From assembly GCA_965644495.1 (NCBI GenBank), contig CBFFSA010000022.1, positions 105,132 through 169,131 of the forward strand: 64,000 nt of DNA, in the 5' to 3' direction. This document shows positions 21,586-58,876 of this stretch, piece by piece. Below the pieces are notes generated by a model. That model searched no databases. It had not been told where the DNA came from and saw only the letters and a list, made by a program, of their open reading frames with translations. Every line of letters begins with the position of its first letter. The stretch's first letter is position 1. Made by a program: the position numbers and the translations under genes. Source of the stretch: Perkinsela sp. CCAP 1560/9. Lineage: Eukaryota > Protista > Euglenozoa: Kinetoplastea.

Positions 21586-22770
21586 ATGCCCCCCACCCCA
21601 ATTACTGCTCGTGCCCGTCGTCCCAGGCGACGACGGGTGGATATTCTTACCCCCGTTTCCTCCCCGTCTCTCCGCCAGCGCGAAAGACGGCCACGCGTGC
21701 GTGGCACTACTCCTCCTCCCCGCCCTCTCTCCCCGTTACGTCTAAGGCGCAGAAGCGTCTCCCTCCCAATCCGTCCTCTACCCCGGCTTCCCGTTCCCGT
21801 TTACACCGCCGCCAAGACCGCCGCCGCCAAAACCGCTGCCGTCGTAACCGCCGACGCCGCGCAGCCTCCAGGAGGACGCCGCCAGGAGCTGCTGAGGGCG
21901 ATTCTTCGAATGCCCCCCGAGGACCCGCGCGCCACTCAATTGGGCGAGGCGCTCAGACCCATGTGGGCAACGGCCACGTGGGCCACAAGGGAGCGACTGT
22001 GGTTCCGCCTGCGCGAGTATTGCCAGGCGAAGGGAATCACCGCGAATCCTGCAAACGCGGTGCTCTTCCTGGAGACTCTGCCTCTCGCTACCTCGACGCG
22101 CATGGGGTACGCAGGGGCATTGAGGACTCTGTTCGAGCTCATGGGAATCGAAGGTACCCCATTGAGTCTCTACGTAAAGGCCCTGCAAGCTCAGGGGGGG
22201 CTAGAACCCACGCGGCAGATGCTACCAATCACGCCACTTCTTCTAAAGAAGCTGAGACGTCATCTCGACGTAAAGGAGAGCATATGTTGCCTCCTGTGTT
22301 GGAAAGCCGCTGCGAGATGGACCGAGACCGCCGACCTGAGGCGGGAGCAGTTCGTGAGTGTGGCCAGTCACGAGGTAATCATTTATTGGGGCAGGGGGAC
22401 CAAGACAACCCGTCTGAATCCTTACCGGCCGTACCTCTACGCGATAGTGACTGGACCGGGGACACCCGAACTGGCTCAGTTTGTGGGAAGTTTGAGACCA
22501 GGCCAGCGCCTGTGTTACACGACGGTCCGGGAGATGGACCACAGGATGAATCAACTTCTCGGTCCGGGGTATGGAACACATTCCATAAAAAGAGGTGCAA
22601 TTACTTACCTATTCCACGAGATCTCCCTCGGGAATCTCAGGATGGAGGACGTCCAGAACCTCACGAAACACCTCAACGTCGAATCACTGTTGCGCTACAA
22701 CGCAAGCAGTATTACAACGGCAAGGGCTCTAGGGACGCAGAGAGTCTCAGCACGTCTCCCAGTGCTGTAA
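21586..22770 (+). CDS. Tyrosine recombinase of VIPER/TATE-like retrotransposon
   Basis: AARWTE (catalytic R), KT, HSIKRG (HxxR-like), KH, LRY (catalytic Y). Confidence 0.88.
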   Translation: MPPTPITARARRPRRRRVDILTPVSSPSLRQRERRPRVRGTTPPPRPLSPLRLRRRSVSLPIRPLPRLPVPVYTAAKTAAAKTAAVVTADAAQPPGGRRQELLRAILRMPPEDPRATQLGEALRPMWATATWATRERLWFRLREYCQAKGITANPANAVLFLETLPLATSTRMGYAGALRTLFELMGIEGTPLSLYVKALQAQGGLEPTRQMLPITPLLLKKLRRHLDVKESICCLLCWKAAARWTETADLRREQFVSVASHEVIIYWGRGTKTTRLNPYRPYLYAIVTGPGTPELAQFVGSLRPGQRLCYTTVREMDHRMNQLLGPGYGTHSIKRGAITYLFHEISLGNLRMEDVQNLTKHLNVESLLRYNASSITTARALGTQRVSARLPVL

Positions 22771-24476
22771 CCTCGGAGCACGTGGCAAAGTGCTTCGAGG
22801 AAGTGCCTTACCTTCGCAGGCACTCCGTTGTTTGTGCACGCCGCTCTTCACGGCTAGCCAAGGCACACGACGCTCACCTACCTTTGCACGTTAAGAAGTC
22901 GATACCTGTTATCCATTTGGATCAGGTTAAGGAGTGGATGAGTCTGTCAGCTGCCACTCGTTTTCGCAAGGTAGTGGATGAATTATTATGGGTACCTAAA
23001 GCCCCGTACCCCGAACCTAGTGTGAAAGGTTCATTGCCTGAGGCGGACGTCCGATTGTTGGAGGACGCAGGCATAATCTCCAAGGTCCCGGCGCAGGAGT
23101 TGAGAAAGCGCCCATCGATGCAGTTCATGATTCCCTTCACGGTTGTGGAGACCGATGATGAGGGCAATCAGCGCAGAAGATTTATTTCATGGACAAGGGA
23201 CGATAACGATAGATTAAAATCATATGAACCAAAGGTCCCATTATATCATCCCTCCAAGTATCTTCATAAGGCGCACGAGCCGATGGCTGTGAAGCGGGAC
23301 TTCACGTGTGGATTTTACCAGATTGGTATCCCAAAGAGGGCGCGGCCCAAATTCCGCCTTAGAACGAACAGTGGAGACGTGTTTGAGATGAACGTCCTCC
23401 CGATGGGCCATAGGTGTGCACCGGAGGTTATGCACACGGTTACCGCCGCGATTGCTGGCGAGGCGTCTATTTGTTCTCAGCGCTACTCGTTTCACCGAGG
23501 CGCTATCGACGTTTATGTTGACGGAGTTCGGTTTGCAGGAACCCACTCCGAGGCCACCACGTACGCTCAGTTCATTGACGAGCGTTGCGACAAGGCGAAC
23601 GGTCTTTTTAAAGATCGGGGTCAGCCCCCTGTAGCACAGTACGTGTTCAATGGGGTGGCGTTCGACCATAACGCGCATACGGTCTGCCTGGGACCGCGAG
23701 TGATCAGGAAACTGCGAGCCGACTCTTTCTTCAACATTTCCTTTGTTGACCTAGAGGCGGTGGTGGGGCGCCTCATTTATGGCTCCGCAGTTCTCCGACT
23801 CAATATGCCGCGATTTTATTTCGCTTTGAAGGTGGCGCAACGGCGTATCAACTTGTTGAACCGTTGCCCGAAGTTATGTGACCGTCCGGTCGCACTCCCT
23901 GTCGTCACTCGCTCCATGCTAGCAGAATGGAGAAACGAGTTGCTGGAGAATGTTCCACGGTCTCCACCTCCCCATCCCGATGTTGTTCCACACAAGCATC
24001 GTCTCTACACCGATGCCTCGGTGAAAGGATGGGGAGCGATTATGTATTTAGACAGCGGAGAGGTTTTGATTACGGGAGAGGCGTGGCCTGAGTCATCCTC
24101 GTATGAGGTGAATCGTGCGGAAGCTGCAGCAGTCCGCTTAGCCCTCGAGAAGTTTTCCGCGCATTGCCCCCGTGGAACCTGCTTGGATGTTTTTGTTGAC
24201 AACACCTCCTGTCAGGCTGCACTGAACAGGAGGATCTCCAAGTCAGAGGGGGTTTCAATGGAATTGCGCGAAGTCCTGCGACTGACAGAGGACAAAGGTA
24301 TTTGTGTCAAGGCAGCGTACATATCCACGGATGAGAACCCGGCGGATGCTGTCAGTCGCGGGAAGGAGATTGAGAGAGAGAAGGTTGAGAAATATAAAGG
24401 CAACATCGACAAATACAGCGATAATCAGCATCATCATATTGGTAAGCTAGACAGTCATATTGAAGGAAAACCCTAG
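21963..24476 (+). CDS. DIRS/VIPER-type RT-RNase H; conserved part begins about 22780, upstream part overlaps YR
   Basis: Same motifs as 8641-10335; poly(A) at 24497-24516. Confidence 0.82.
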   Translation: MGNGHVGHKGATVVPPARVLPGEGNHRESCKRGALPGDSASRYLDAHGVRRGIEDSVRAHGNRRYPIESLRKGPASSGGARTHAADATNHATSSKEAETSSRRKGEHMLPPVLESRCEMDRDRRPEAGAVRECGQSRGNHLLGQGDQDNPSESLPAVPLRDSDWTGDTRTGSVCGKFETRPAPVLHDGPGDGPQDESTSRSGVWNTFHKKRCNYLPIPRDLPRESQDGGRPEPHETPQRRITVALQRKQYYNGKGSRDAESLSTSPSAVTSEHVAKCFEEVPYLRRHSVVCARRSSRLAKAHDAHLPLHVKKSIPVIHLDQVKEWMSLSAATRFRKVVDELLWVPKAPYPEPSVKGSLPEADVRLLEDAGIISKVPAQELRKRPSMQFMIPFTVVETDDEGNQRRRFISWTRDDNDRLKSYEPKVPLYHPSKYLHKAHEPMAVKRDFTCGFYQIGIPKRARPKFRLRTNSGDVFEMNVLPMGHRCAPEVMHTVTAAIAGEASICSQRYSFHRGAIDVYVDGVRFAGTHSEATTYAQFIDERCDKANGLFKDRGQPPVAQYVFNGVAFDHNAHTVCLGPRVIRKLRADSFFNISFVDLEAVVGRLIYGSAVLRLNMPRFYFALKVAQRRINLLNRCPKLCDRPVALPVVTRSMLAEWRNELLENVPRSPPPHPDVVPHKHRLYTDASVKGWGAIMYLDSGEVLITGEAWPESSSYEVNRAEAAAVRLALEKFSAHCPRGTCLDVFVDNTSCQAALNRRISKSEGVSMELREVLRLTEDKGICVKAAYISTDENPADAVSRGKEIEREKVEKYKGNIDKYSDNQHHHIGKLDSHIEGKP

Positions 24477-24518
24477 GGGACAGGATCACCAAATACAAAA
24501 AAAAAAAAAAAAAAAAGT

Positions 24519-25121
24519 CACACATTACTCGTCACACATGACGACCGGCTGGATTCATTCCGAACTGGTCGTTTGCGCCCATGAACATCTGGTCGGGATG
24601 CTGGTCGGGTCGACAGAGTCTATGCTCACGCCTAGTCCGTCAGGGCTAGGTACCCCAAGTGAGGTAGTACACGGGTAGTGAATCTCCTCCCCGTCGACCA
24701 GCATCCTGTTTCGCGACCGTGTCGCTGTCGACACAGGCCCGCGCCTGCGCCCTCCCATATAGCAAGGGAAGGGTTCACAAGTCAGGCCGTGGAGAGGTCG
24801 AAAGACCCGGTCCGGGACGCGCGAATGGATTGGGTCTGTATTGCTTGTTTTAGTTTTTACTGTTTCTTGTTTGTATTATATACTTAGGGGAGATTAAATT
24901 GCTAGTTTTGGGCTGAGAGAAAAAACAATAGGTACATCTGTGGAAACAAAAAGATTTGCTAAAAAAATTTTCAAATTGCTAATTTGATTGTTTGTTTTCA
25001 ACTCGTATCCCCCCCCCCCCCAATGGACCTACTTGGTTCGTCTACTGGGTCAAAATATAGAGGCAATGCCGCGTTTTATACTTCTCCCCCCTTATTAAAA
25101 AAAAAAAAAAAAAAAAAAAAA
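24519..25121 (+). mobile_element. Isolated 3' UTR plus poly(A) of CRE-like family B
   Basis: Homologous to reverse complement of 38600-39060 and 3985-4430; poly(A) 25097-25121. Confidence 0.8.
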
Positions 25122-26777
25122 CTTCCACCTGATCCCTCATCTGAATTATTGGAGCGCGCTGACAAGATTGCCTGCGACATTAAGAACTCTACAGAAGGCG
25201 AAACGCCAGACACAGGACACCAGAATGCTACCACCGAAGAAGAACTGTTCTCCAGTGTCCGCCCGACGGAAAGCCTCGAGTTCCAATTCGAAGGAGCCAA
25301 TTCCTCTTCACTCAGCCAATTAAAGTCCTCTAGCAAGGCTGTGAAGGAGAAGTACGAGCGCCATAACCGCAGGGTAGGCTGTGCCGAATATGACTATGCT
25401 GATAACAGGCTAGTTTTTCCTGATCTCACGCCTCCTGATCTTCGCTTCTCAGTAAAGGGTAGCAGTAAAGGCCGTAAAAAGAAGAAACGCCCGAAGGGCA
25501 TCAATCTTTCTCAGCTGGATGCAGTGTCCGGGGCCGACAGCGAGGAACGCGACAATATAGAGTCCAGCGCGAATTCACCCGGGCCACGCACTCATGCCAC
25601 CGGAGTCATGGACAGCCCGTCTATCAAATTGTCCCAAAAGGAACAGAACACTAACACCCCCACGGGTAAGCGTAAACGTCACGTGCAGGTGTCGAAACCA
25701 GGGCCACGCGATTCCTCAGATACCGAAAGGCTCAATCAACCCCCCAATACCACTCCAGAAAAGCCACCTACAGTCAATGGAAACACGCGGAAATGTCCTT
25801 CTCAGGGATGTGCATGGCAAACTGTGCCTCACGGGGGCCAATGGCAATCCTTTTATAACCACGTATCCCACAGACACGGGGACGAGGTGCCTGATACCTG
25901 GTGGAACGAGGAGGGACGTTTCCGATGCAGGGATTGCAACAGGCACTACAACCTAAGCAAACAGGTCACCCATGCCGAAAACTGCGCTTTCCGCTGCTCT
26001 TCTCCCCCACCTATCTCCGAACCTACACAGACAGGGGGCGACCCGAGGGACAACCCTGCATTTTTTGCCGCACAAGCCGTCGCCGAACCCCTTCCCTCCC
26101 TGGCGTCAATCTGTTCGACACCTCTCAACACATGCAAAGACATTCCCAACAGCTGTCGCCAGGGGTGGGCGAAAGTCTTCTGTGAGTGTCTCTCTTCCGC
26201 TGTACGAGACAATACAGTTGAGGCCTGGACTCTTCTCGCCATGCTACCGAAATGCGTACTACCGGCACCTCATCGTGGGGGGAGCAGGGCAAAACTATCG
26301 TACGCCTCGCACGTTCGGAAGTGTCTCGCCCGGTGGTCACGGAAAGAATTTCTCCCCCTTTGGAACGAAACAATTGCGAGCCTACAACACAAAAAACGCG
26401 TCGCACAAGCACAGAGTCCGGAGGACGAGATAACCAAATCTGCTATGCGAGCTGAAAGACTCGTTCGCGACTCGGAACTATCTCGAGCTATGGCTGCCCT
26501 AACCTCTGAACCAGTAGCCCCGTATGACGATGATACTTACACTAAACTCCAAGCTAAGCATCCATCCCGACTCGCTACGTCGGTGAAACCCCTCAGTTCT
26601 TCGACGGAAATGGGACCAAAACCACTTCGAGCCACAGAGGAAGACGTAACGCAGGCTCTTGCAACTTTTCACCGGGGGTCATCGGGTGGCGCTTTTGGGC
26701 TACGCCCTGAACACGTACAAGTGGCACTAGAGTACCACCATGACGGCCGTACGGATCCATTGGGTACACTGACCCAT
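25122..26777 (+). pseudogene. N-terminal fragment of CRE-like family B ORF (partial LsmAD-like, two Zn fingers, pre-RT), broken by the 18-bp array
   Basis: Collinear with 39201-43265 (CPSQGC..HVSHRH, CRDC..H...C, AMLPKC, GSSGGAFGLRPEH). Confidence 0.9.
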
Positions 26778-29700
26778 TTAAGACCACTTTTTGTATTAAG
26801 ACCACTTTTTGTATTAAGACCACTTTTTGTATTAAGACCACTTTTTGTATTAAGACCACTTTTTGTATTAAGACCACTTTTTGTATTAAGACCACTTTTT
26901 GTATTAAGACCACTTTTTGTATTAAGACCACTTTTTGTATTAAGACCACTTTTTGTATTAAGACCACTTTTTGTATTAAGACCACTTTTTGTATTAAGAC
27001 CACTTTTTGTATTAAGACCACTTTTTGTATTAAGACCACTTTTTGTATTAAGACCACTTTTTGTATTAAGACCACTTTTTGTATTAAGACCACTTTTTGT
27101 ATTAAGACCACTTTTTGTATTAAGACCACTTTTTGTATTAAGACCACTTTTTGTATTAAGACCACTTTTTGTATTAAGACCACTTTTTGTATTAAGACCA
27201 CTTTTTGTATTAAGACCACTTTTTGTATTAAGACCACTTTTTGTATTAAGACCACTTTTTGTATTAAGACCACTTTTTGTATTAAGACCACTTTTTGTAT
27301 TAAGACCACTTTTGTATTAAGACCACTTTTTGTATTAAGACCACTTTTTGTATTAAGACCACTTTTTGTATTAAGACCACTTTTTGTATTAAGACCACTT
27401 TTTGTATTAAGACCACTTTTTGTATTAAGACCACTTTTTGTATTAAGACCACTTTTTGTATTAAGACCACTTTTTGTATTAAGACCACTTTTTGTATTAA
27501 GACCACTTTTTGTATTAAGACCACTTTTTGTATTAAGACCACTTTTTGTATTAAGACCACTTTTTGTATTAAGACCACTTTTTGTATTAAGACCACTTTT
27601 TGTATTAAGACCACTTTTTGTATTAAGACCACTTTTTGTATTAAGACCACTTTTTGTATTAAGACCACTTTTTGTATTAAGACCACTTTTTGTATTAAGA
27701 CCACTTTTTGTATTAAGACCACTTTTTGTATTAAGACCACTTTTTGTATTAAGACCACTTTTTGTATTAAGACCACTTTTTGTATTAAGACCACTTTTTG
27801 TATTAAGACCACTTTTTGTATTAAGACCACTTTTTGTATTAAGACCACTTTTTGTATTAAGACCACTTTTTGTATTAAGACCACTTTTTGTATTAAGACC
27901 ACTTTTTGTATTAAGACCACTTTTTGTATTAAGACCACTTTTTGTATTAAGACCACTTTTTGTATTAAGACCACTTTTTGTATTAAGACCACTTTTTGTA
28001 TTAAGACCACTTTTTGTATTAAGACCACTTTTTGTATTAAGACCACTTTTTGTATTAAGACCACTTTTTGTATTAAGACCACTTTTTGTATTAAGACCAC
28101 TTTTTGTATTAAGACCACTTTTTGTATTAAGACCACTTTTTGTATTAAGACCACTTTTTGTATTAAGACCACTTTTTGTATTAAGACCACTTTTTGTATT
28201 AAGACCACTTTTTGTATTAAGACCACTTTTTGTATTAAGACCACTTTTTGTATTAAGACCACTTTTTGTATTAAGACCACTTTTTGTATTAAGACCACTT
28301 TTTGTATTAAGACCACTTTTTGTATTAAGACCACTTTTTGTATTAAGACCACTTTTTGTATTAAGACCACTTTTTGTATTAAGACCACTTTTTGTATTAA
28401 GACCACTTTTTGTATTAAGACCACTTTTTGTATTAAGACCACTTTTTGTATTAAGACCACTTTTTGTATTAAGACCACTTTTTGTATTAAGACCACTTTT
28501 TGTATTAAGACCACTTTTTGTATTAAGACCACTTTTTGTATTAAGACCACTTTTTGTATTAAGACCACTTTTTGTATTAAGACCACTTTTTGTATTAAGA
28601 CCACTTTTTGTATTAAGACCACTTTTTGTATTAAGACCACTTTTTGTATTAAGACCACTTTTTGTATTAAGACCACTTTTTGTATTAAGACCACTTTTTG
28701 TATTAAGACCACTTTTTGTATTAAGACCACTTTTTGTATTAAGACCACTTTTTGTATTAAGACCACTTTTTGTATTAAGACCACTTTTTGTATTAAGACC
28801 ACTTTTTGTATTAAGACCACTTTTTGTATTAAGACCACTTTTTGTATTAAGACCACTTTTTGTATTAAGACCACTTTTTGTATTAAGACCACTTTTTGTA
28901 TTAAGACCACTTTTTGTATTAAGACCACTTTTTGTATTAAGACCACTTTTTGTATTAAGACCACTTTTTGTATTAAGACCACTTTTTGTATTAGACCACT
29001 TTTTGTATTAAGACCACTTTTTGTATTAAGACCACTTTTTGTATTAAGACCACTTTTTGTATTAAGACCACTTTTTGTATTAAGACCACTTTTTGTATTA
29101 AGACCACTTTTTGTATTAAGACCACTTTTTGTATTAAGACCACTTTTTGTATTAAGACCACTTTTTGTATTAAGACCACTTTTTGTATTAAGACCACTTT
29201 TTGTATTAAGACCACTTTTTGTATTAAGACCACTTTTTGTATTAAGACCACTTTTTGTATTAAGACCACTTTTTGTATTAAGACCACTTTTTGTATTAAG
29301 ACCACTTTTTGTATTAAGACCACTTTTTGTATTAAGACCACTTTTTGTATTAAGACCACTTTTTGTATTAAGACCACTTTTTGTATTAAGACCACTTTTT
29401 GTATTAAGACCACTTTTTGTATTAAGACCACTTTTTGTATTAAGACCACTTTTTGTATTAAGACCACTTTTTGTATTAAGACCACTTTTTGTATTAAGAC
29501 CACTTTTTGTATTAAGACCACTTTTTGTATTAAGACCACTTTTTGTATTAAGACCACTTTTTGTATTAAGACCACTTTTTGTATTAAGACCACTTTTTGT
29601 ATTAAGACCACTTTTTGTATTAAGACCACTTTTTGTATTAAGACCACTTTTTGTATTAAGACCACTTTTTGTATTAAGACCACTTTTTGTATTAAGACCA

Positions 29701-31009
29701 CTTTTTGTATTAAGACCACTTTTTGTATTAAGACCACTTTTTGTATTAAGACCACTTTTTGTATTAAGACCACTTTTTGTATTAAGACCACTTTTTGTAT
29801 TAAGACCACTTTTTGTATTAAGACCACTTTTTGTATTAAGACCACTTTTTGTATTAAGACCACTTTTTGTATTAAGACCACTTTTTGTATTAAGACCACT
29901 TTTTGTATTAAGACCACTTTTTGTATTAAGACCACTTTTTGTATTAAGACCACTTTTTGTATTAAGACCACTTTTTGTATTAAGACCACTTTTTGTATTA
30001 AGACCACTTTTTGTATTAAGACCACTTTTTGTATTAAGACCACTTTTTGTATTAAGACCACTTTTTGTATTAAGACCACTTTTTGTATTAAGACCACTTT
30101 TTGTATTAAGACCACTTTTTGTATTAAGACCACTTTTTGTATTAAGACCACTTTTTGTATTAAGACCACTTTTTGTATTAAGACCACTTTTTGTATTAAG
30201 ACCACTTTTTGTATTAAGACCACTTTTTGTATTAAGACCACTTTTTGTATTAAGACCACTTTTTGTATTAAGACCACTTTTTGTATTAAGACCACTTTTT
30301 GTATTAAGACCACTTTTTGTATTAAGACCACTTTTTGTATTAAGACCACTTTTTGTATTAAGACCACTTTTTGTATTAAGACCACTTTTTGTATTAAGAC
30401 CACTTTTTGTATTAAGACCACTTTTTGTATTAAGACCACTTTTTGTATTAAGACCACTTTTTGTATTAAGACCACTTTTTGTATTAAGACCACTTTTTGT
30501 ATTAAGACCACTTTTTGTATTAAGACCACTTTTTGTATTAAGACCACTTTTTGTATTAAGACCACTTTTTGTATTAAGACCACTTTTTGTATTAAGACCA
30601 CTTTTTGTATTAAGACCACTTTTTGTATTAAGACCACTTTTTGTATTAAGACCACTTTTTGTATTAAGACCACTTTTTGTATTAAGACCACTTTTTGTAT
30701 TAAGACCACTTTTTGTATTAAGACCACTTTTTGTATTAAGACCACTTTTTGTATTAAGACCACTTTTTGTATTAAGACCACTTTTTGTATTAAGACCACT
30801 TTTTGTATTAAGACCACTTTTTGTATTAAGACCACTTTTTGTATTAAGACCACTTTTTGTATTAAGACCACTTTTTGTATTAAGACCACTTTTTGTATTA
30901 AGACCACTTTTTGTATTAAGACCACTTTTTGTATTAAGACCACTTTTTGTATTAAGACCACTTTTTGTATTAAGACCACTTTTTGTATTAAGACCACTTT
31001 TTGTATTAA
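26778..31009 (+). repeat. 18-bp tandem array (TATTAAGACCACTTTTTG)n, about 235 copies
   Basis: Read directly; only two 1-nt deletions seen (~27311, ~28993). Confidence 0.98.
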
Positions 31010-31023
31010 TACGTTGGTACAAA

Positions 31024-34000
31024 ATGGCGGAGGCCTCCGGACCGTTCGAAAGTGTGTTGGAAGTCTGTGGCAAACTTCGGACGGCCAGGTGTGGTCGGGG
31101 CAACCTTTTTCTGCCTCCACAGCAGAGGGGGGTTGGGACAAAACTCCGGCAGCGGGCCCTTTTACAGATGTCAAAGGTTTTGGCTGTGGGAAAACGCGTG
31201 GCTGTTGTTTGGTGTATGGCTTATAACGAACGTATTACACTCTGGGAAGGGGTGGTTCACTCATCGCTTGATGGGTCTGGTTGGCTCGTCAAGTACGACT
31301 TGATGAATGGGCGCCTTCTCCCGTTTCCTCCGAGAGATGATCGTATCCATGTGCTAGGCGGCAGAGTTGGACTGCTTCCAAAATCTTTGCGCAAACGTAA
31401 TCGGAAACGCAAATCCTGCTTTCGGCGTGGCTACCGAGAGCAGAGACCCAAGATCAAAGCTATGAGAGAGGGGTTTGCAGTAAGCACCATGAATGTAGAT
31501 ACTTTAAAGTGTAAAACCACAGACGAGTTTGCTCTACGTAAATGTTTCCGTTTGCATCAAGCTGTAGAGTTCATGCGAAGTTACGGCGTAACAATAATGG
31601 CCTTGCAGGAAACGCGACTATCGTTCAAGAGCGAGGAACCGATCATTCATCGTAGGCTCTATCTGGCTGGCATTAGTGTTCATATATATATTATGAGTGC
31701 AATAAAGGGCTATAACGGAATGGCAATGCTGAGTCTGCAACCCATGGGTGTTGAAAAGATCAATGATCGCATTATGAAAGGAACAATGCATATTGGAAAG
31801 ATGAAGGCGTGTATATTTAATGTTTACTCCCCGACGGCTGGTGCAAAGAAAGATAAGCAAGAATCGTTTGATGAGGAGCTATTTGATGCTTGGCATGATT
31901 CACAATGTTCGCTAAAGATAATATGCGGAGACATGAACGCACCTTTGCAAGATCCAAATGGCAGAAAATGTTGTTCGGAAAGAGCGCAAGAATTTCGCAA
32001 ATTTTTGGTAACCCTTGGATCTAAATCGGCTCATCAATGTTGCAGCGCAGAAAGAAAGTGGACTTATAGGTTTCCACCTACGCCGAAACACCCTGATGGT
32101 CTAACAAAACAGCTTGATCATATCATAATAAATTCCCGTTTCAGCTCAGCATTTCGGTATCAGAAGGTGCTTTTGGCTCCCATACCTACGAGACACTGTG
32201 CAGTAATAGCAGGATTAAATATAAAATGGAGAGTGGCATGCAAACCTGGTAAGTTACAACCGTTTTGGGGATCCTTGAGAAACGAAACCATATGTGATAC
32301 ATTCGTGAAAAATGTGGAGGAGTCAATTCAGGGGGGAAATAAACGGTCACGAGAAGGGTCAATTGGTCCCGCTTTATGGGATAAGCTATCGTCCGCAGTC
32401 AACTCCGCCGCAGAGAAATTACCCAGGAAAATTGCCAATATTGGAAAAGCTCCTGACTCGGAAACTGACTCGCATTCCCTTGATATGAAAACTATTGTGC
32501 AAATTGCTCGAAATCGAAGGACTTTCGATACCTTTGCTCGAGAACATGGAAAAATGATTGAAGAATGCGTGAAAGAAGAATGTGAAGTGATCCAAGAAAA
32601 GCTATATAAATGTCCAAAAAGCGCGTATCAAGCAATTCGCTATATTGTAGGGGAAAATCGAAAAGTATTCTCCATGTTTGGTGAAAATGTTCGAGACAGT
32701 ATGTGCAGAGTGAGAGGACATTTTCAGGCGATAGGTAACCAATTAAATCAAATTTCCGAACCGATAAACTTTCCTAACTGTAATAAAAGCTTAATTGGTA
32801 TTGAGGATACGGAATTTACCCTAAAGGAGCTCAGAATTTCTCTGCAAAAAGTCAAATCTGGAAAAGCCTCAGGCTCCGACAACATTCCTATTGAGGCTCT
32901 CTCTACATTGGCTCAGAGCGAAGAAGCACTTGGCATGCTCTTGAACATAATAAATGAAGTAATGTGTACTGGTGCCGCGGCGGATAAATGGAAGATGATT
33001 CTGCAAGTGCCACTTCCAAAGAAAGGGAATCTCAATGATCTTACAAATTGGAGACCGATATGCATTGTAAACCATGTGGTAAAGGTAATGAACCGGATGG
33101 TACTAGAGCGTATACAACCAGCCGTTGAGAATATGCTTCGCTCAAATCAGTTTGGATTTCGCCCGCACCGATCCACTGCCGGCGCAAAGGCAACTTTCGT
33201 GGAAATAGCTACTAAAGCTTCGAGGGGAGAAGGTGTTGCGGTAGCGTTTGTTGACTTTAAGCAGGCATTTCCTTCCGTTACTTTCTCTGCAATACGAGAT
33301 GCGCTGAGAGCATTCCACATACCGGAAAATATTACTAAAGTTATTATGAGCATGTATGAAGGCCTGAAATCTTATGTGAGGACGCCTCATGGTGACACCG
33401 AATCGTTTTCTATTGAAAATGGTACTCTACAAGGGGATGTGCTCGCGCCATATCTCTTTATTATGGTCCTCGACAGGATTATGGCAGAGGCCATTGACGC
33501 GAAGGGGTTGGGTGTCATTGCTTATTCCACCGGGACGAAGAGTCGCGGCGAAAAGCACCTCCGAATTTCTGATGTGGCATATGCAGATGACGTAGTTCTC
33601 TTCGCTTCTTCTAGGTCTGAACTCTCCGAAATGCTAGAAAACCTGTGCAAGTATGCAAAGAGGGCAAACCTTCAGGTAAATCTGGGCAAAAACAAGACCG
33701 CATGGATGGTTCTAGGAAAAATTGATGACATGACAGCTCCCCTTCTAGTCCCAAGTGTTGGAGAAATCCCCCGAGTATACAAATATAAATATCTTGGAAG
33801 TACACAAGAGAATGAAAATCGTCATGTAGCCCCACAAGAACGCATTCGTCTAGGATGGGCCACAATGCATAAACTTCATGCGATATGGAACTCACCCATT
33901 CAAGTCGCAAGTCGGTTAAAAATATTTCGAACACTTGTTATGCCTGTTATTAATTACAACTGCGGCACGTGGAATATTTCATCGAATCAAATGAGCGAAT

Positions 34001-35319
34001 TGGACGTACAAGTCAGCAAAATGCGAAGATGGGTATGCGGAGTAGGGAAAAGATGGAAAACGGGAAAGTGCATTCGTCTTGAATCTCTTTATCAAGATGA
34101 CTTGAAACTCAGCACAACATCAAAAATACAACGTGCTCAACTTATTGGCCATCTTGTTCGACATGAATCGCCGTTTAGCCTAGCCATTCTGTGGCGCGTG
34201 CAAGACAAATCATCATACCCTTCGATCTCTGAATTATGCGCAAAAGATTTAAATCTTTCAATAGAAGAAGTCATACATTCGTCTCGGGACCGCGCCTTAT
34301 GGAGGTCAAGCGTTGATCGACTACGAAATCGGATCGAACCACGCCCTGATTATGTACCCATCGAAGCAAAATCATGGGAAAAACGAGCAATGGTTGCACG
34401 AAAAGAATATAAGTCACTACAATTCGTCGAAGAAGGCGCATTGCCATTCCCAAATATTTCTCCAGCCGTACACATGTATACTGATGGCTCCCTTAAAACA
34501 ACGAAATCGAAAGTTACTCCTGGATGCGGAATCGTGTGGTGGGGGGATGGTATTGAGAAGTCCTTAATGGGAGTACGACCTCCAACGGATATTGAGCTCA
34601 CCATAACTGCGGTAGAGCTCTATGCCGTATATGAGGCACTGAATCTTGCGGCACATTATGGGCAGGACATTGTATTACACACAGACTCAAAATACGTATG
34701 GGAATTCTTCCACATTATAAGGCATCGATTTTGCATAGTTGGGTTTCAATTATTCCAGAGCGCGCAACTACTCAAGAAGATACAACTTTTGTGTTCTAAG
34801 ATCGAGCAAAATAGCAATGTATATTGCATCAAAACCAGAGGGCATGAAGGAAACCCGCACAACGCAACCTCAGACTGGCTCGCTAAACGAGCTTGCGCAC
34901 ATCAAGACGAAAACCCTTCCTTTACTTACCGCGGTTTTGATATCGTGACCAATCAAAAGAGGAAAGGTAACGAAATTCAAAACAATATGAAAAAGAACAA
35001 AAACAAAAATACGAAATTACCAGAGTTTGCGCACACACCTATCGAAATGTCTCCTACGCACTCTATAAGCACGAAAAATAAAGGTAACCTGATAAATGAA
35101 AAGGGGAAACGATCAAGATCCAAGAACAAGCGTGAAAATGCGAATACGCACAGCAACCAAAAAGCACGAAAAGCTGATGGAAAGAGGAGTACGAATACAT
35201 ATTCACCAGGATTCGCAGAGGTAACTTTAGCAAGAAAGCATCCACAAAGAAAGCGAGCTAATTGTGAAGAGGAGTGCAAGAGAACTCGAAAGGGGGGGAG
35301 CTCTTCTTCTAAAACGTGA
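31024..35319 (+). CDS. Intact single-ORF non-LTR retrotransposon polyprotein: APE endonuclease, RT, RNase H (Ingi/L1Tc-like architecture)
   Basis: APE: STMNV, LQETR, NVYSPT, GDMNA, LDHI; RT: KASGSD, WRPI, QFGFR, DFKQAF, GTLQGDVLAP, YADD, YKYLG; RNase H: YTDGS, VELYA, TDS, GH..N..SD. Confidence 0.95.
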   Translation: MAEASGPFESVLEVCGKLRTARCGRGNLFLPPQQRGVGTKLRQRALLQMSKVLAVGKRVAVVWCMAYNERITLWEGVVHSSLDGSGWLVKYDLMNGRLLPFPPRDDRIHVLGGRVGLLPKSLRKRNRKRKSCFRRGYREQRPKIKAMREGFAVSTMNVDTLKCKTTDEFALRKCFRLHQAVEFMRSYGVTIMALQETRLSFKSEEPIIHRRLYLAGISVHIYIMSAIKGYNGMAMLSLQPMGVEKINDRIMKGTMHIGKMKACIFNVYSPTAGAKKDKQESFDEELFDAWHDSQCSLKIICGDMNAPLQDPNGRKCCSERAQEFRKFLVTLGSKSAHQCCSAERKWTYRFPPTPKHPDGLTKQLDHIIINSRFSSAFRYQKVLLAPIPTRHCAVIAGLNIKWRVACKPGKLQPFWGSLRNETICDTFVKNVEESIQGGNKRSREGSIGPALWDKLSSAVNSAAEKLPRKIANIGKAPDSETDSHSLDMKTIVQIARNRRTFDTFAREHGKMIEECVKEECEVIQEKLYKCPKSAYQAIRYIVGENRKVFSMFGENVRDSMCRVRGHFQAIGNQLNQISEPINFPNCNKSLIGIEDTEFTLKELRISLQKVKSGKASGSDNIPIEALSTLAQSEEALGMLLNIINEVMCTGAAADKWKMILQVPLPKKGNLNDLTNWRPICIVNHVVKVMNRMVLERIQPAVENMLRSNQFGFRPHRSTAGAKATFVEIATKASRGEGVAVAFVDFKQAFPSVTFSAIRDALRAFHIPENITKVIMSMYEGLKSYVRTPHGDTESFSIENGTLQGDVLAPYLFIMVLDRIMAEAIDAKGLGVIAYSTGTKSRGEKHLRISDVAYADDVVLFASSRSELSEMLENLCKYAKRANLQVNLGKNKTAWMVLGKIDDMTAPLLVPSVGEIPRVYKYKYLGSTQENENRHVAPQERIRLGWATMHKLHAIWNSPIQVASRLKIFRTLVMPVINYNCGTWNISSNQMSELDVQVSKMRRWVCGVGKRWKTGKCIRLESLYQDDLKLSTTSKIQRAQLIGHLVRHESPFSLAILWRVQDKSSYPSISELCAKDLNLSIEEVIHSSRDRALWRSSVDRLRNRIEPRPDYVPIEAKSWEKRAMVARKEYKSLQFVEEGALPFPNISPAVHMYTDGSLKTTKSKVTPGCGIVWWGDGIEKSLMGVRPPTDIELTITAVELYAVYEALNLAAHYGQDIVLHTDSKYVWEFFHIIRHRFCIVGFQLFQSAQLLKKIQLLCSKIEQNSNVYCIKTRGHEGNPHNATSDWLAKRACAHQDENPSFTYRGFDIVTNQKRKGNEIQNNMKKNKNKNTKLPEFAHTPIEMSPTHSISTKNKGNLINEKGKRSRSKNKRENANTHSNQKARKADGKRSTNTYSPGFAEVTLARKHPQRKRANCEEECKRTRKGGSSSSKT

Positions 35320-35736
35320 TTTTGGAAGCCCAAAAGTTGAATGGAGTATCATTTTATTTATTTTGTTTATTTATTTTTACTTTTATTTTATATTCAATAA
35401 TGCGATCAATTGGTCTGTTTCAGCAGTTGAAGAGGGGGTTGTGAGACGAAGGGTTGTTCATATATTTATATATATATTTATAAATTGTATTTATACGTTA
35501 TTATTTGTTTTAGTTGTGTTTCGCCAGCAGATAAGGTGGCCAAGTGTATGGGAGGTGAGTTGGAGGACATTTTCGCCCTATAGGGCCATTCTCATAAGAA
35601 AGTAATGAGGATGCACGAGTTCTTGGCTGCAGATGGACTCTTTGCGCGTAAATTTTATGTGAGTTTACATGGAGAAGTGTTTATGTTTATGGTGTAAATT
35701 GTAAACCCCCCAGCTGATATATATGTATCAGTGTCT

Positions 35737-35758
35737 TTGTTGTTTGTTGTTGTTGTTG
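35737..35758 (+). repeat. (TGT)n 3' tail of the LINE
   Basis: Simple repeat ending the AT-rich 3' UTR, abutting a truncated CRE ORF. Confidence 0.7.
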
Positions 35759-38498
35759 GATGCAACGTAAGCCGCGGAGGCGTGGAGAGCTGCGGATCTC
35801 AGACCTAATCCCCCATGACGCTTCAGTCGCTGTGCTTGAGATTGTGCTGACCTGTCCAGAGGACAGATGATTGCCTCTATAGCGGTCATGAGAAAGTCGT
35901 CTAAACGGGAGCAAAGGTGAATCAGGGACTGTGGGGGCGTGCTTCTCATGGCATACACCATTTGACAGAACCCCGCACATTGACGAATTAGGGCAAGCGC
36001 GACCTGGGGGTCCTGAATGTTGGTGATGGCATCGAGGGTATCCTCGGCTGGTTCTAGGGCGTGAGAAAGAAGATAAGCAGAGCAGTGGTCGGCGGATCCT
36101 ACAGGACTCCCTAGTATGTCAAAGTTCCCCTGCGAATTGATCTTCTCGTCGGGTATGTCTGGGAAGTAATCAGCCTGGTGGGCCGAGCTGGGGGAAGTAA
36201 TAATTTCGCATTTCGACGTATTGAGATACAAGTCCCATTGAGGTCCTACTCGGGCGATCGTGTCTAGGGCGTCTCTAACTTCCTGCGCCTGGCCAACGAG
36301 GACGCCATCGTCGAGATACCAGAGTTGGGCGGGAATATCAGTTTGAAGGTTAATGGCTTCTGAGAGCTCCAGGGCCACTAACGAGAAGAGCAATGGTCCT
36401 AGGGGATCGCCCTGTTGTACTCCTTCCTCGGAGGAGATGAATCGGGCCCCGTAGGTAAGAGAGCTGGGGTCGGAATAGCACCAATTGATCCAAGGGAAGA
36501 GTTCCGGGAAATATTCCTGTACTAGTGGAAGGAAGGCAGCCCTGCTTACGTTATTGAAAGCGTTACGTAGGTCCACTTTGCACATGACGAAGTTCGGGTT
36601 TTCCATATTGGACGACATGGCCAGGCGACACATGTGAATGACTCTTTCGGCCCCGGCTGGAGCTGCCACTCCGTACTGTTTGCCTTCAAAGAGCTCGCTC
36701 GCTTTGGGTCGGATTGCGTTGCATACGGCTTTGCTCGCTAATCGCCGAAGGGTTTCACCGGCAGCGATCGGACGAACATCATTTTCACCCTTTGATAGGG
36801 CGCATAAGCGCGCCCCTGCGAAGTGCGCCTGTACTTCAGAGGGTGCCTTCCCAGCTAGGAGGTGATTTGTTAGCTTTGTGAGGGATCGGAGAAAGTCATT
36901 TCCGTGTACGAGCAGTGCTGCCTGTAGGTGCTCTGGGCGTAATCCCATAGTGCCGGCAGAGGAACCCCTGTTGAAGCTCTTCAGCGTCTTTGCAACTTCG
37001 CGTTCGTCAAGTTCCAGTGGAGCGCAGTTCGGGGGCGGGCAGTTTTCGCACGAGTCAATTTGAAGACGACGGGGGTGTTTTTCTAGCAATTTTTCAAATG
37101 TTCGTCATCGTCAGGCGCCATTGGATCTGACGTTAGGGAGGCCAACCCTCTAGAGAGCTCGCCGTGGCGGACGAGGAGTTCTGCTCGAATCGCTGCCTTC
37201 TCGTCTTCGTCAGGGAATTCCGTTGGAGATTTTTGCTTTTTTCGACAGGCTACAATTGCTTCGCTCCATAGGTCCGAGTACTCTTGTTCCGCCCAACGCT
37301 GCATGCATTTATACGCATGTGAGGCATATGCCATGTGGCCTTTGCGGCCCCCTCGATGCGGAGCTGGTAAAACGCATTTGGGAAGCATGGCCAGAAGCGT
37401 CCATGCCTGTAAGGAGTTTTCAGAGACCGCGTTCCGAATGGCGGAGGAGAGGATTTCTTCCCAGATCTGGCGGCAACGATAAGGCACGTCTTTGCACGTA
37501 CTCAGCTGAAGAGAGCAGACAGAAGGAAGAGGTGGGAGCTCAAAGTTGGTGTTCTCTGGTGTTGGTGCGGTGCTCACTTCGTTGGGTGGAGTAAGAAGTT
37601 CGGGAGAAAGGAGCGCGACGGTTTTCGTTCCTTTGCAGCTGTGTGTGTGCGATGATCGTTTGTGGTTGTCGTAGTGGCGTCCGCATGAGGTGCATAGAAA
37701 ACGGCCTTCTCTGTACCACCATTCATTAGGGATGCTGTTACCGTGCCGGCATGCGACATGGTTATAGAAGGCTTGCCAGGATCCGCCATGCGACGGACTG
37801 CGCCATGAACATCCCTGGGCCGGGCACTCTCGGAGCGCGGCAGACTTTCCTTGGGACAATGAGTTGGGCTCAGCGAGGCTAACGCCAGCGTTTTCAATAT
37901 TCTGGGTTTCGTGTCTTCTTCCTGGTTGCTCTTGAGATGGGCCCGGAATAAGTTCATAAGGATGCAAGAGTGAAGGTGTCTCTGGGTCTACCCGGTATCG
38001 GATGAGCTTATTTCTCCGTGGAGTAGGGGTTTTCTTGGAGTGACCTTTAATGTCCTCATTGCTACGTGCTTGGGCGGATAGAGCAGTTTTGAGTGGTGTA
38101 CTTAGATGCTGTGTAGCATTCAAAGCCTCTTTCGTCTTCTTCGCTGGCGTTACTTGCCTGATAACAGCGGAGTGTTGCATCTCTTCATTTTCGACCTCCG
38201 TGTGACCTGTGTCCGGTGTTTCATTAACCCCACCTACGATCGCGTTCGTTCGGCGGATCCAATCTTCAGGAATATTCTGAGGGATGGGGGTCGTGTAAAG
38301 GTCTTCATGGTATGTGCTCGTCCCCGTGATTAAATGTTCGTTTCCTTTAAATTGGTCCCAAGACCCCGGTCGGTGAGTTCTGCCATTAATTTCTAAGCAT
38401 TTGTCGTCCGTCTCCATGGCTTCGGCTTCGTGGTCCGGATTTCCGCTGTTGTCGTCTATGGGAGGAAGTGTGACTGCGGGGGGGATGATACCAGACAT
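35759..38498 (-). pseudogene. CRE-like family B2 (LsmAD-like, Zn fingers, RT), frameshift at ~37090, 3'-truncated
   Basis: ORFs 37083-38627 and 35728-37089; QYGV, DLRNAFN, GVQQGDPLGP, WYLDDG; ATG at 38498. Confidence 0.9.
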
Positions 38499-38542
38499 AA
38501 AAATTAACCCGTACCTCGGAAAGAGATGAAATAGAAAAAATT

Positions 38543-38581
38543 CAACAAGGTACAGAAACTGTATCTTTATCGTTAAAGATT
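38543..38581 (-). other. Complete 39-nt spliced-leader copy
   Basis: AATCTTTAACGATAAAGATACAGTTTCTGTACCTTGTTG; contains the kinetoplastid SL core ACAGTTTCTGTAC..TTG; directly preceded by poly(A). Confidence 0.88.
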
Positions 38582-39200
38582 TTTTTTTTTTTTTTTTTTT
38601 TTGGGTATATGAATTTAAAACAAGCAATCAAATTGGCAATTCTTTTTATTTCCACAGAAGCATATTTTCTTTTTCTTTTTTTTCTCAGCCCAAAACTAGC
38701 AATTCACCTTTTTTTTTTTTTCTTTTTCTTTTTTCTCAGCCCAAAACTAGCAATTCAATCTCCCCTAAGTATATACGACAAATAAGACACAGTAAAAATT
38801 AAAACAAGCAATCCAGACCCAATCCATTCGCGCGTTCCGGACCGGGTCTTTCGACCTCTCCACGGCCTGACTTGTGAACCCTTCCCTTGCTATACGGGAG
38901 GGCGCAGGCGCGGGCCTGTGTCGACAACGACACGGTCACGAAACAGGATGCTGGCCGACGGGGAGGAGATTCACTACCCGTGTACTACCTCACTTGGGGT
39001 ACCTAGCCCTGACGGACTAGGCGTGAGCATAGACTCTGTCGACCCGACCAGCATCCGTACCGGGAGTTTCCCACGAAAGTCACCTGGCCATACCCCTGGT
39101 CATACACAACGAGAGCCGGGTCGGCGTTTGCCGCGGGAAAACGTTGTATAGCGGCCAGATTTCGCAGGCGAGGAAGTCTTTGGGTGTGGCGAGTGATCCA

Positions 39201-42200
39201 CTACTCGTTCCCATAGCCTAGGAGCGCTGAATCAGGACCCACAGCAGGCCGGCGTAGGACGAGCATGCGGGCTTGGGATCTCATGAGGGTTACATTTAGG
39301 GATGTAAGCAACCGGTGTAGAGCATCCCCTTTCGGTAAAATATCCCCGGAATTGGCATTGCATGCCCTACCTGCAGCAACCACCCTAAGGATTGACATTG
39401 CGCTAGGGCTCCACGAGCCAAACGATTCTACCACCATGGCGGTAAACTTCATTCGCACCGCTTCAGCCTCTTCTCGTTGTTTAGCCTTGTTGGCGGTCGC
39501 GTATTGCTCCGCAAACGACCCCGCCGTCACCCAGTTAGCGTCACGGACTGTGTCCGTATATTTTTGTTGCTGGACATGAGTGACAGCGAAGTCGAGTACG
39601 AGGGCCTGACCGCGACCGAAACTTCGGATGAATACGTCCCCAGGTCTGGTGAGTGCGCCACCCGGACCTATGTTCCCCAAACTCACTTCTCTTTGAGGGG
39701 CAAGCCCGGCCTTTGAACATTCCGCAGAGAATTGGGATACCAAGGCACTGTGCCGAGCAGTGATCCCGTGCCCGCATTTGCATGCCAGTGCGTGTTCACC
39801 CCCTGGGCCTAAGGGCTGTTTGCACTTTTCCATGGGGCAGGGACGGAGGCCCGGGTAGATGGTTTCCCCCAGCCACCAACGGATTAACATGCGAAACTCC
39901 GTGGGGGCGTACGCAAAGCCGTTCTTTTTGGACGGCAACACGAAAGCCCACTCCGACGCCCCTTCTCCCGTTTCCGAGCTCCACCGAGCCCTCGTGCTTG
40001 GATCAGCGTGGGCGAGTGCGTGTTCGAACGCGTGGGATGAAATAGCATGGCTCAGGTCCCTTTGTCGAGGTATGACCAATTTATTGTCTATTTCATGGAT
40101 CGGATTGGTTTGAAAGGGTTGGTGCTCTGAAACGGCCGAGCTTTGTAGAATTTTGCCCGTTTCATTGTCAACGATATTCTTCCCTGCGCGTTTGTTCACG
40201 TCGATCACTGCCTCATCGAAATCTTTTGCGTCCGTTGGATCCCAAAAGTCTTTCTCCGCTGCGAAGGCGACTGAGGCCACATAAGCGGAGGCAGAATGCT
40301 CCTCAGCTGAACGGAGTCCCAAGCCACCAAACCGTTTGCCTCTCTGTGCTTGGCGCCTTGCTGCGTCGCTGAATGGCCCGAAAAAGTGTGAGGTAGCGTC
40401 TTGCACTGCGTCGTCGAGACGTCGGCAGAGATCCTGGAGCTCCGACGTTGGGGTAGTACGGAGTGAGTAGACCATCTGACAGAAGCCCGTGCAATGCCGA
40501 ATAAGTGAAAGGGCTACCTGGGGGTCCTCGAGGTTGGTAATGGCTTCCAGCGAGTCCTCTGCGTGTTCAATGGCGTTGTCAAGGAGAAATTGACGGCGGA
40601 ACTCGGTTGTCCCTACAGGGCTACCTAACATATGGAAATTACCCTCAGTGTTTTTATTCGATCCAGGTAGGTCGGGGAAGACAGAAGAACGATGAGACGA
40701 TGCGGGGTGCGCAGCGAGTTCACATTTCGCAGCATTCAGATGTAAACCCCATCGCGGGCCGTTTAGTTCTAGCACATCAAATGCGTGTCGTACATCGCAT
40801 GATGCGCCCGCCAGTATTCCGTCATCTAGATACCATAGATTCAGGTCTAGTTTCGGTGTTGCCGCGTGGATTTCCGAAGCAAGCTCCCTCATAACCAGTG
40901 AGAAGAGGAGGGGGCCAAGGGGGTCGCCTTGTTGTACCCCTTCAGAAGACTTTACCGTACGCGTACCGAATGTGAGTAAACTTTCTGTAGAATAACACCA
41001 CTCTACATAATGACTGAGTTCGGGAAAGTGCATGCGCGTTAAATCAGTGAACCTGTCACGGGACACCTGGTTGAAGGCATTCCGGAGGTCTATTTTGCAT
41101 AGAAGGAAGTCGTCATCGTCTACGTGGGCCGCGAATGTCTGACGGCAAAGATGGATAACACGTTCCGCCCCGGCCGGTGTAGCGACCCCGTATTGGTGTC
41201 CCTTAAAAAGTTTGCGGGCTCTGGTTTTGGCAGAGAAGCAAGCAACTTTGCTGGCCAAGCGGCGAAGGGTTTCACCAGCGGCGATCGGGCGTACGTCGTG
41301 TTCCCCCTTCTTCAAGGCACACAATCGACCTCCAGCGTAGTGGCTTTTGACTTCTAATGGTGCTTTTCCGGCTAGCATGTGATTGGTGAACTTTGTGAGT
41401 ATTTCCAAAGGACCGGTCTGACCATCGTGATGACCATGTATAGCAACTTGCACGTGTTCCGGCCGCAGACCAAAGGCACCCCCGGAGGAACCCCGATGAA
41501 AAGTCGAGAGTGCCGCCGATACTTCATCCTCCGTCACTTTAAGAGGTTCCACGTCCACTGATGGGCTGGGTGTATCTGATGCGGAGAGTCGGGGGGGATG
41601 CTTTGCCTGAAGCTTTGCGTAAGTCTCATCATTGTCCGGAGCGAGTGGCGCAGATGTCAGTGCGGTCATGGCGCGTGAGAGCTCCCCGTCACGTACGAGT
41701 CTTTCGGCTCGTAGTGCGGATTTTTTCTCTTCTTCTTCGAGACTCTGCGCTTTCTCCACGCTTCTCTTCTTCTTGCCCGTGACGCTCTTGACAGCTTCAG
41801 CCCAGAGCGCCAGGAACTCTTTCTTGGACCAGCGAGAAAGGCATTTCCGTACGTGGGAAGCATACGATGTTTTCGCCCGGCTACCTCCTCGATGGGGGGC
41901 AGGTATAACGCATTTGGGCAGCATAGCGAGGAGAGTCCACGCTTCAATGGTATTCTCTCGGATTACCGAATCTAGACACCCGCAAAGCGCCTTTGCCCAC
42001 TCTGGTCGGCAGCTGTTGGGTATATCTTTGCAAGTGGTAATGGGCAAGGCGCATATGGAAAAGAGACTTGGAAGGGGTGTGTCACTGTTCATTATATAGG
42101 TTTCGTCGGTAGTGTTCTGGTCTGCCTGTGCGTCGGATATTTCGTTTTTCTCTAGCGGCACGTCAGCACTCGAGACAGAAGTGTCGTCACTCGGTGTGGG

Positions 42201-43226: not shown

Positions 43227-43259
43227 GTAATGGTTGAATGTAAGAAAGAAAAAATAATT

Positions 43260-43297
43260 CAACAAGGTACAGAAACTGTATCTTTATCGTTAAAGAT
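43260..43297 (-). other. Spliced-leader copy (38 nt)
   Basis: ATCTTTAACGATAAAGATACAGTTTCTGTACCTTGTTG, 33 nt before ATG. Confidence 0.88.
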
Positions 43298-53790: not shown

Positions 53791-54575
53791 CTAAATTCCC
53801 AACTCTGCGGCACCCTTATCCTTCTCCAGAAAAGACCGCAGCTGTGAATGCACAACGGCCCCATTTAACTCTTGCAGGTGGAGCTGAAATTCGAGGTGTA
53901 CTTGCTTCCGGGGGAGACAGCACGCATCTGCTAGAGCACTCAGAAGGGACTTCGTGTTGTGGTGAAGCGCCCCCCCTGACAGCATTGGAATGCATCTGAA
54001 CATGTCCTCAGGAATTGTGCCGGGTCGGACGTAAGTGTCATGCTTACGTTTGATGGCATCACGAAACAGCTTTGCACAGTTTGTACCTAGGTTCGATGCC
54101 TCTAATTCATGAATTACGGTGAAATCATAAAAAATTTCCCCTGTATTCCAAAAAACGACAAGGTCAGGTCCTGATCTTCGAAAAGAACGACCACCGCATA
54201 CCTTTTCATGCGTCCGCCGGTAATCGGAGTCCACTTTCTGGTTACACTGCGTGCACGCATATGTCGAGAAATTACGCGGTTCTTTTTCGCATGGAATGCC
54301 TGCCTTCAAACAGAGCTCGTAAAGAAAATTGACTAGCGAATTATGTTTTGTAGTTGCGTTTAAGCCTTGGCACTTCGAACACCCGGGGATGTGTGTTAAA
54401 ATTGTTTGCGATTCTAGTAGCATTTTGCAACCCGGGCAGAGCAATTGCTTAGGTAGACTCGGATGAGCAATACCCAATCTCGGCATCATTGCAAGCGAGA
54501 ACAAATGCGAGGGCACAAATTTTGCATTGGACATAACCCATTCTGCATTACCCGTGTAACTTACCGCTTTCAGGA
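53791..54575 (-). pseudogene. 3' fragment of CRE-like element (CCHC plus RLE)
   Basis: CPGC..THIPGC, KHN, EPR, CTQC..H...C, SGPD..FYD. Confidence 0.88.
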
Positions 54576-54595
54576 TCCAATCCAATCCAATCCAA
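54576..54595 (-). repeat. (TTGGA)4 3' tail of the LINE
   Basis: TCCAA x4 on the plus strand, at the end of the 3' UTR. Confidence 0.7.
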
Positions 54596-58864: not shown

Positions 58865-58876
58865 TTTGCAAATAAA

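Follow-up and report, generated by a model that had tools for sequence, protein, structure and literature searches.

Perkinsela sp. CCAP 1560/9 carries, in the 64,000-nt stretch of contig CBFFSA010000022.1 that was analysed here (hereafter the window), a long interspersed nuclear element (LINE) headed by a long array of an 18-bp minisatellite, and the question raised by this locus is whether such an array is host DNA beside which the element landed or a product of the element itself and, in the latter case, how it is written. Comparison of the locus with its relatives throughout the genome favours the second answer. With a probability put at roughly 55%, the terminal ~18 nt of the element are reiteratively copied by its own reverse transcriptase (RT) during retrotransposition, a reading that depends on what is repeated, where the repeats begin and what encloses them.

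The array occupies positions 26778-31009 (plus strand, as for all features below unless stated). Tandem Repeats Finder (TRF) counted 235.2 copies with 99% matches, close to the ~235 near-perfect copies reported in an earlier note on this DNA, and unit parsing resolved it into 234 units of GACCACTTTTTGTATTAA, the first of them partial; 232 of these are identical, the other two differing by 1-nt homopolymer changes, and a pattern search for the unit returned 234 matches against 0.03 expected by chance. The last unit (30992-31009) stops 14 bp 5′ of the ATG at 31024 (context CAAAATGGCGGA), from which an open reading frame (ORF) remains open over 1431 aa (31024-35319). It comprises an N-terminal region, an apurinic/apyrimidinic endonuclease (APE; Exo_endo_phos, residues 171-373), an RT (RVT_1, 665-926), an RNase H (RNase_H, 1148-1291) and a basic K/R/N-rich tail, and the three domains exceed the Pfam cut-offs in both intact LINE ORFs of the window. 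Thus, the element is, by its domain content, an APE-RT-RNase H LINE, and both coordinates and Pfam agree with what the earlier note had read at this end of the array. In the C-terminal 140 aa, neither a CCHH pattern nor a Pfam match was found, that is, no C2H2 zinc finger. According to the comparison of copies, the 3′ untranslated region (UTR; 35320-35758) contains a short stem-loop (CTGATA..TATCAG) followed by a (GTT)n microsatellite at ~35738-35758, and the similarity among copies ends within this tail, whose length varies from copy to copy. Inspection of the downstream flank revealed no array 3′ of the tail, and the left array end adjoins a 3′-truncated CRE-like ORF, both as previously described.

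The supposition that array and LINE had arrived as a unit was confirmed at a sister locus on contig C34, where a 13-bp duplication, GGGTACACTGACC, encloses a CAT filler, the array, the LINE and its tail, and where the CRE-like ORF resumes after the tail exactly at the break, colinear with a reference copy of this ORF (window 41390-39205). In the window, the left copy of this target-site duplication (TSD) lies at 26762-26774 and the CAT filler at 26775-26777, a junction that holds 0-3 nt of filler at other loci; the right copy is absent. Four copies of other subfamilies (L006, L029, L023 and L020, with 4.9, 44, 53 and 59 units, respectively) presented TSDs of 8-11 bp around array and LINE, which makes five loci in total with TSDs of 8-13 bp in this arrangement. 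Since the TSD at C34 brackets both, the array is, judging by these junctions, part of the element and not a pre-existing target, and the TSDs altogether rule out insertion beside a pre-existing satellite as a general explanation.

The comparison of window 22265-35753 with L031 and L035 (C34:36000-49496) revealed that window 22265-31680 is identical to C34, with 0 differences in 4513 nt of flank and 234 units in both arrays, and that this identity covers the first 670 nt of the LINE. From 31681 on, 28 sites and a 6-bp indel distinguish the two LINE bodies, and the right flanks bear no relation to each other. This configuration points either to ectopic recombination of two LINE copies or to a mis-join introduced within the LINE by the assembly, and the right flank being recombinant or mis-joined would be the reason why no TSD was found in the flanks searched around the window copy. 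It was also considered whether the flanks of the window copy were an inverted duplication, which was rejected because they are different CRE-like copies, and the equal number of 234 units at C22 (the contig of the window) and C34 was dropped as evidence of array stability, given the identical flanks.

The behaviour of the family as a whole was examined in a genome of 21 Mb in 110 contigs, from which copies were collected by protein search, resulting in a census of 39 element heads and 15 unit types. The units measure 17-19 nt, and each is specific to a subfamily. It was observed that 32 of the 39 heads are multi-unit, with 2 to more than 290 units, that four (L015, L047, L053 and L039) hold exactly one unit starting at its first G (G1), and that the remaining three are truncated inside a unit. 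The array end on the LINE side has a constant phase across heads; the far end may fall at any phase and is joined with 0-3 filler nt, and 3 of ~12 arrays begin exactly at G1 there. Arrays are confined to the 5′ side, none of the examined heads having a cognate array 3′ of its tail. The check outlined in the earlier note, namely whether a cognate array recurs at the same phase and only on the 5′ side, thus came out positive for most of the 39 heads, and its notion of a LINE lineage carrying its own 5′ minisatellite holds, now with subfamily-specific units. All 15 unit types also keep a pyrimidine tract followed by AG, whose G is the first nt of the next unit.

Genome-wide, ~2000 matches to the unit pattern of the window were found, roughly one per unit. 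Approximately 1300 of them lie outside the examined loci. These matches support the satellite-seeding role once suggested for the array, as a consequence of the arrays that elements carry. Truncated copies of the family are represented by L014, L016 and window 5186-6817. The 3′ ends of L001, L006, L010, L018, L023 and L029 consist of a short stem-loop and a subfamily-specific microsatellite tail, of the types (GTT)n, (GGTT)n, (TTA)n and (GGATT)n, in which the repeat number varies between copies. Outside the family, the protein search returned distant matches only, a protein atlas search retrieved only generic LINE clusters, and a metagenome scan with the conserved start motif, a pattern too unspecific for the purpose, yielded 119 unrelated GC-rich matches and no relative. 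A contig of the European Nucleotide Archive containing P0001, considered as an independent copy, proved to be the same locus as L005. Besides, inverted arrays of the unit of another subfamily are placed directly upstream of the LINE head or its own array at L039:940-1015 and L051:232-567, and the L044 copy has an array of at least 42 units. The L006, L010 and L013 heads display ATT, TTG or ATA at the conserved start position, with ORFs otherwise long and open, for which non-AUG initiation or ribozyme-assisted initiation is possible.

What is repeated became apparent from the base complementarity between the array unit and the coding region. In every unit type, the first six nt can pair with the six nt immediately 5′ of an invariant GGGG ~100 nt downstream, within the ORF, and the pairings change in concert among subfamilies (GACCAC/GUGGUC, GACAAC/GUUGUC, GAGAAC/GUUCUC, GAUCAA/UUGAUC, GAACAC/GUGUUC and GCUUG/CAAGC). 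RNAalifold, on a first, poorly anchored alignment, found the P4 region alone; a structure worked out by hand, in which a helix table of 17 subfamily representatives and a 16-sequence alignment (A2) for covariation were used, takes this pairing as the P1 of a self-cleaving ribozyme like that of the hepatitis delta virus (HDV). In the window, P1 would join 30992-30997 with 31091-31096 (helix table, covariation) and would be followed by a J1/2 hairpin (30999-31005 with 31018-31024; helix table and minimum free energy, MFE) and by P2 (31026-31032 with 31144-31150), in which GGCGGAG, overlapping the AUG, faces CUCCGNN. P3 (31033-31035 with 31088-31090) has 3 covarying bp, found as GCC/GGU, GCG/CGU, GCG/CGC, GCU/AGC and ACC/GGU. 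In the helix table, L3 starts with UCCGG (31036-31040), the CC of which would pair with the GG at 31097-31098 to form P1.1, and a further hairpin is inserted in L3 (31042-31050 with 31076-31084; also in the MFE fold). A covarying hairpin, P4 (31104-31114 with 31122-31132), precedes J4/2, read as GACAAAA in the helix table, with its invariant C at 31139. Across subfamilies, J4/2 reads GC(N)AAA, with an invariant C just 5′ of P2′ as the candidate catalytic C, and we take it to resemble the GCGAAU of HDV and CPEB3.

The order of these helices (P1, P2, P3-L3-P3′, P1′, P1.1, P4, J4/2 and P2′) matches the nested double pseudoknot of HDV-like ribozymes. The whole structure was 81% paired, compared with 71% in shuffles, none of 500 of which reached it, and with at most 56% in slid controls. 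Among the 16 sequences, P1 was 95.8% paired, with both-side changes at five of its six pairs, and P3, P4 and P2 were 100%, 85.6% and 82% paired, respectively, compensatory changes being found in all four helices; P1.1 is invariant, and covariation speaks neither for nor against it. The single-sequence MFE fold of 30992-31150 recovered P1, both extra hairpins and P4 (z = −3.13). Moreover, G1 is invariant across heads, and the single-unit copies begin at it. On these grounds, the 159 nt at 30992-31150 are predicted to be an HDV-like self-cleaving ribozyme that overlaps the start codon and cuts 5′ of G30992. From this predicted cut it follows that the 18-bp unit would be nt 1-18 of the processed RNA, comprising the 5′ strand of P1 and the 5′ arm of the hairpin. 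The earlier idea of an array in place of a 5′UTR has to be amended in that the array, rather than taking the place of an ingi/L1Tc-type head, reiterates the first 18 nt of the predicted ribozyme; it is probably not a 5′UTR, because the ribozyme as predicted would remove the upstream units from the RNA.

These features can be joined in the following model. The predicted ribozyme would free the element RNA from longer transcripts and set its 5′ end at G30992. At the end of first-strand synthesis, RT would recopy the terminal 17-19 nt repeatedly, by slipping back or by jumping onto the template end, until a last round of copying breaks off, at whatever phase, and the cDNA becomes linked to the target through 0-3 filler nt. 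In this way, each insertion would have an array of its own within the target duplication from the outset, and blocks of the array would be rearranged later by unequal exchange or multi-unit slippage; such reshuffling at the DNA level is likely. The reiteration is tied to retrotransposition because in 15 unit types it starts exactly where the RNA 5′ end is predicted, because ~80% of heads are multi-unit and because it lies inside TSDs. In copies of one subfamily, the canonical block on the LINE side comprised 133, 44, 19 and 3 units, which argues that arrays are not inherited whole from one master array. In addition, length variants fall at the unit joint (TAA/TAAA before G), and in L008, L024, L025 and L027 it is invariably the canonical 18-mer that adjoins the LINE, the length variants lying farther out, an order that suggests outward growth. 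The variable-length 3′ microsatellite tails of the family would be expected of a slippage-prone RT. We infer both that the ribozyme is active and that RT, rather than DNA replication, writes the repeats; among the three roles considered in the earlier note (multimeric promoter, product of reiterative RT copying and satellite seeding), reiterative copying would be the best fit.

A more specific version of the model, in which the RT would act like a telomerase on its own RNA, recopying the terminal 17-19 nt, possibly on an oligonucleotide released by RNase H, and laying down up to 5 kb of minisatellite per insertion, is held tentatively, at somewhat under even odds. The spacing between polymerase and RNase H of retroviral RTs is close to 17-19 nt. 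As the unit length is near this spacing, a terminal oligonucleotide released by RNase H could be the reused template, which is speculative.

Several observations weigh against the proposed reiteration and the ribozyme on which it leans. The structure was derived from the same sequences on which the pairing was counted, and the proposed fold carries the hairpin inserted in L3, for which we know of no counterpart among described HDV-like ribozymes. Rfam models detected no ribozyme at ten heads (30900-31500 of the window at E ≤ 10 and nine other heads at E ≤ 1), and none reached the gathering score in the whole window; the large J1/2 and L3 insertions may account for the missed Rfam detection. 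The alternation of long 17- and 18-mer blocks and the recurring variant patterns (L004 and array A) are unlike the product of one fixed RNA template, so that unequal exchange, multi-unit slippage or RNA-borne arrays may contribute. No sequencing run on record as RNA holds the element, one possible RNA run being almost devoid of element words. Finally, C22 and C34 form the sole duplicated pair and do not differ in their flanks, so that their equal unit number says little on array stability.

Other origins of the array can be weighed against the same evidence. It could be argued that LINEs of this family insert beside or into pre-existing satellites, the array being host DNA, and there is in fact one such event in the window, where the 5′-truncated LINE at 5186-6817 entered an array that was already there and is now flanked by it on either side, the look of a true target-into-array case. 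At the heads, in contrast, five loci have array and LINE together inside their TSDs, the target at C34 was a contiguous CRE-like ORF, the sequence of the unit changes in concert with a helix strand located in the coding region and cognate arrays 3′ of the tail are lacking at all heads examined, which makes this explanation extremely improbable. It is unlikely, to a far lesser degree, that arrays are carried by the RNA, from transcripts that start in or above the array or are cut at an upstream unit and take many units into the cDNA, arrays then being inherited, shortened by 5′ truncation and occasionally altered by repeat slippage between RNA and cDNA. P1′ can indeed pair with every unit, since each holds a P1 strand, far-end phases vary as in ordinary 5′ truncation, with the few starts at G1 already mentioned, and slippage on a multi-unit template would fit the recurring variant patterns. 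However, the block patterns on the LINE side are not common to copies of one subfamily, and growth to more than 290 units goes beyond inheritance alone; moreover, most daughters should have a single unit if, as expected, the cut falls predominantly at the last unit, but arrays are present at 32 of the 39 heads.

Expansion after insertion, by which one or two units present at first would multiply through replication slippage or unequal sister-chromatid exchange, appears just as unlikely as RNA-borne arrays. Unequal exchange typically leaves such traces as the 18|17|18|17 blocks of array C and the duplicated higher-order variant patterns of L004 and array A, but it is not thereby explained why in 15 unit types the repeats start exactly at the predicted 5′ end of the RNA or why ~80% of copies should have undergone a first duplication. 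In older arrays, besides, singleton variants are scattered at a density near the divergence of the element body, which indicates little homogenisation; L003, for instance, has 7 variants in 82 units on the LINE side, and its body is 99.0% identical to that of L001. A last proposal regards the array as a selected module, composed of units that would act as promoters, initiators or trans-splice acceptors, that is, expression signals brought along wherever the element lands, for which the pyrimidine tract and AG kept in all unit types despite sequence divergence would speak, as would the first 77 nt of L1Tc, which are promoter and ribozyme both (PMC5814959). This is quite unlikely, considering that conservation of the T-rich part is explained by its being an arm of a conserved hairpin as well, and that single-unit copies exist. 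It was also observed that a putative trans-splice acceptor at the unit AG would sit one nt from the predicted ribozyme cut.

Reiterative copying by RT, the preferred reading, finds its closest known system in L1Tc/ingi with the Pr77 head, which unites an internal promoter and the ribozyme L1TcRz. In L1Tc, an active HDV-like ribozyme is located at nt +1, and the RNA 5′ end is defined without a spliced leader (PMC5814959). The two systems are alike in architecture and host, in that APE, RT and RNase H are encoded in a single ORF, an HDV-like ribozyme (here predicted) stands at the start and the host is of kinetoplastid type. Unlike that of L1Tc/ingi, the ribozyme predicted here measures ~155-160 nt, has extra hairpins and extends over the start codon and the first ~42 codons; L1Tc has a C-terminal C2H2 zinc finger (NAC), whereas the Perkinsela LINE has none; and in the Perkinsela LINE up to hundreds of tandem copies of the first 17-19 nt are present, nothing of the kind being described for L1Tc/ingi. 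Ingi-type LINEs in Perkinsela are mentioned in an earlier publication, the main text of which does not refer to 5′ arrays (PMC5601477). As for the final step of copying, it was demonstrated that the R2 protein performs template jumping at the end of cDNA synthesis (PMC3774820, PMC11371274). As in R2 and further LINEs that start with an HDV-like ribozyme, an exact 5′ end would result from self-cleavage out of a co-transcript, but R2 is a site-specific element with a restriction-like endonuclease and lacks a terminal minisatellite.

Other LINEs have tandem modules at their 5′ ends, such as the 185-bp repeats of SLACS and the modules of TRE5-A from Dictyostelium. They share with the Perkinsela family, as do mouse L1 monomers, a variable number of direct repeats at the LINE 5′ end; monomers of the mouse L1 type, however, are ~200 bp long, few and act as promoters, whereas the units described here are 17-19 nt long, can exceed 290 in number and would be the first nt of the predicted processed RNA. 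At the opposite end, the (TGTAA)n 3′ tail of UnaL2, a stringent-type LINE, is ascribed to template slippage. In such tails, which the Perkinsela family also has, the RT of the element reiterates a short terminal template, but this takes place at initiation, on the RNA 3′ end and with units of 3-8 nt, while the present case would involve termination, the RNA 5′ end and units of ~18 nt. Telomerase works alike in that an RT copies a short RNA segment repeatedly into long homogeneous tandem repeats; unlike telomerase, the Perkinsela element has no dedicated template RNA and no evident role at chromosome ends, its units differ by subfamily, and its arrays lie internally, enclosed within TSDs. HDV-like ribozymes at the 5′ end of LINEs are already known, but literature searches retrieved no account of a LINE whose 5′ end is terminally reiterated, with its first ~18 nt turned into a minisatellite.

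If the reading is correct, it would represent a new route from retrotransposition to satellite DNA, in which the first 18 nt of an element become arrays of hundreds of units at the moment of insertion, and a natural case of an RT that reiterates its terminal template. It would also bear on how retroelements gain defined RNA ends under polycistronic transcription, and the 15 unit types, each covarying with a helix in the coding region, make the ribozyme directly testable.

The window contains three further 18-bp arrays with related units, one of which heads a second intact LINE of the same family on the minus strand (54575-58894). Its ORF (58864-54785) encodes 1359 aa, the protein being only 37% identical to that of the first LINE, and its 3′ tail is (GGATT)n near 54575. 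The ribozyme is predicted at 58894-58741, with a P1 in which 58894-58889 pairs with 58800-58795. The array of this LINE (58877-64000, minus strand) sits 12 bp upstream of its ATG and reaches the end of contig C22; it holds at least 291 units of GATCAAGTTTTTTGTAA(A), arranged from the LINE outward in blocks of 133 18-mers, 99 17-mers, 29 18-mers and 30 17-mers.

An orphan array of GACAACGTTTTTTATTAA, the unit of the L012 subfamily, is found at 4798-8508, and its own LINE is missing, so that arrays without elements, the existence of which had been put forward as a point to check, do occur. It is split into two pieces (4798-5185 and 6818-8508) by the nested LINE at 5186-6817, which belongs to another subfamily and displays a (TTA)n tail and an apparent TSD, TTATTAAGA, and it stops mid-unit against a 5′-truncated poly(A) element (8509-10424). 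Between 4600 and 58900, the window consists nearly entirely of retroelements placed head to tail, with no unique DNA between them, all on the plus strand up to 35758 and all on the minus strand from 35759 to 58894. The CRE-like ORFs at 16725-18227, 37083-38627 and 39201-43265 show weak N-terminal matches to the Pfam family LsmAD, all under the cut-off, and a 177-bp tandem repeat (52333-53614), with 7.2 copies and 95% matches, lies between two minus-strand retroelements.

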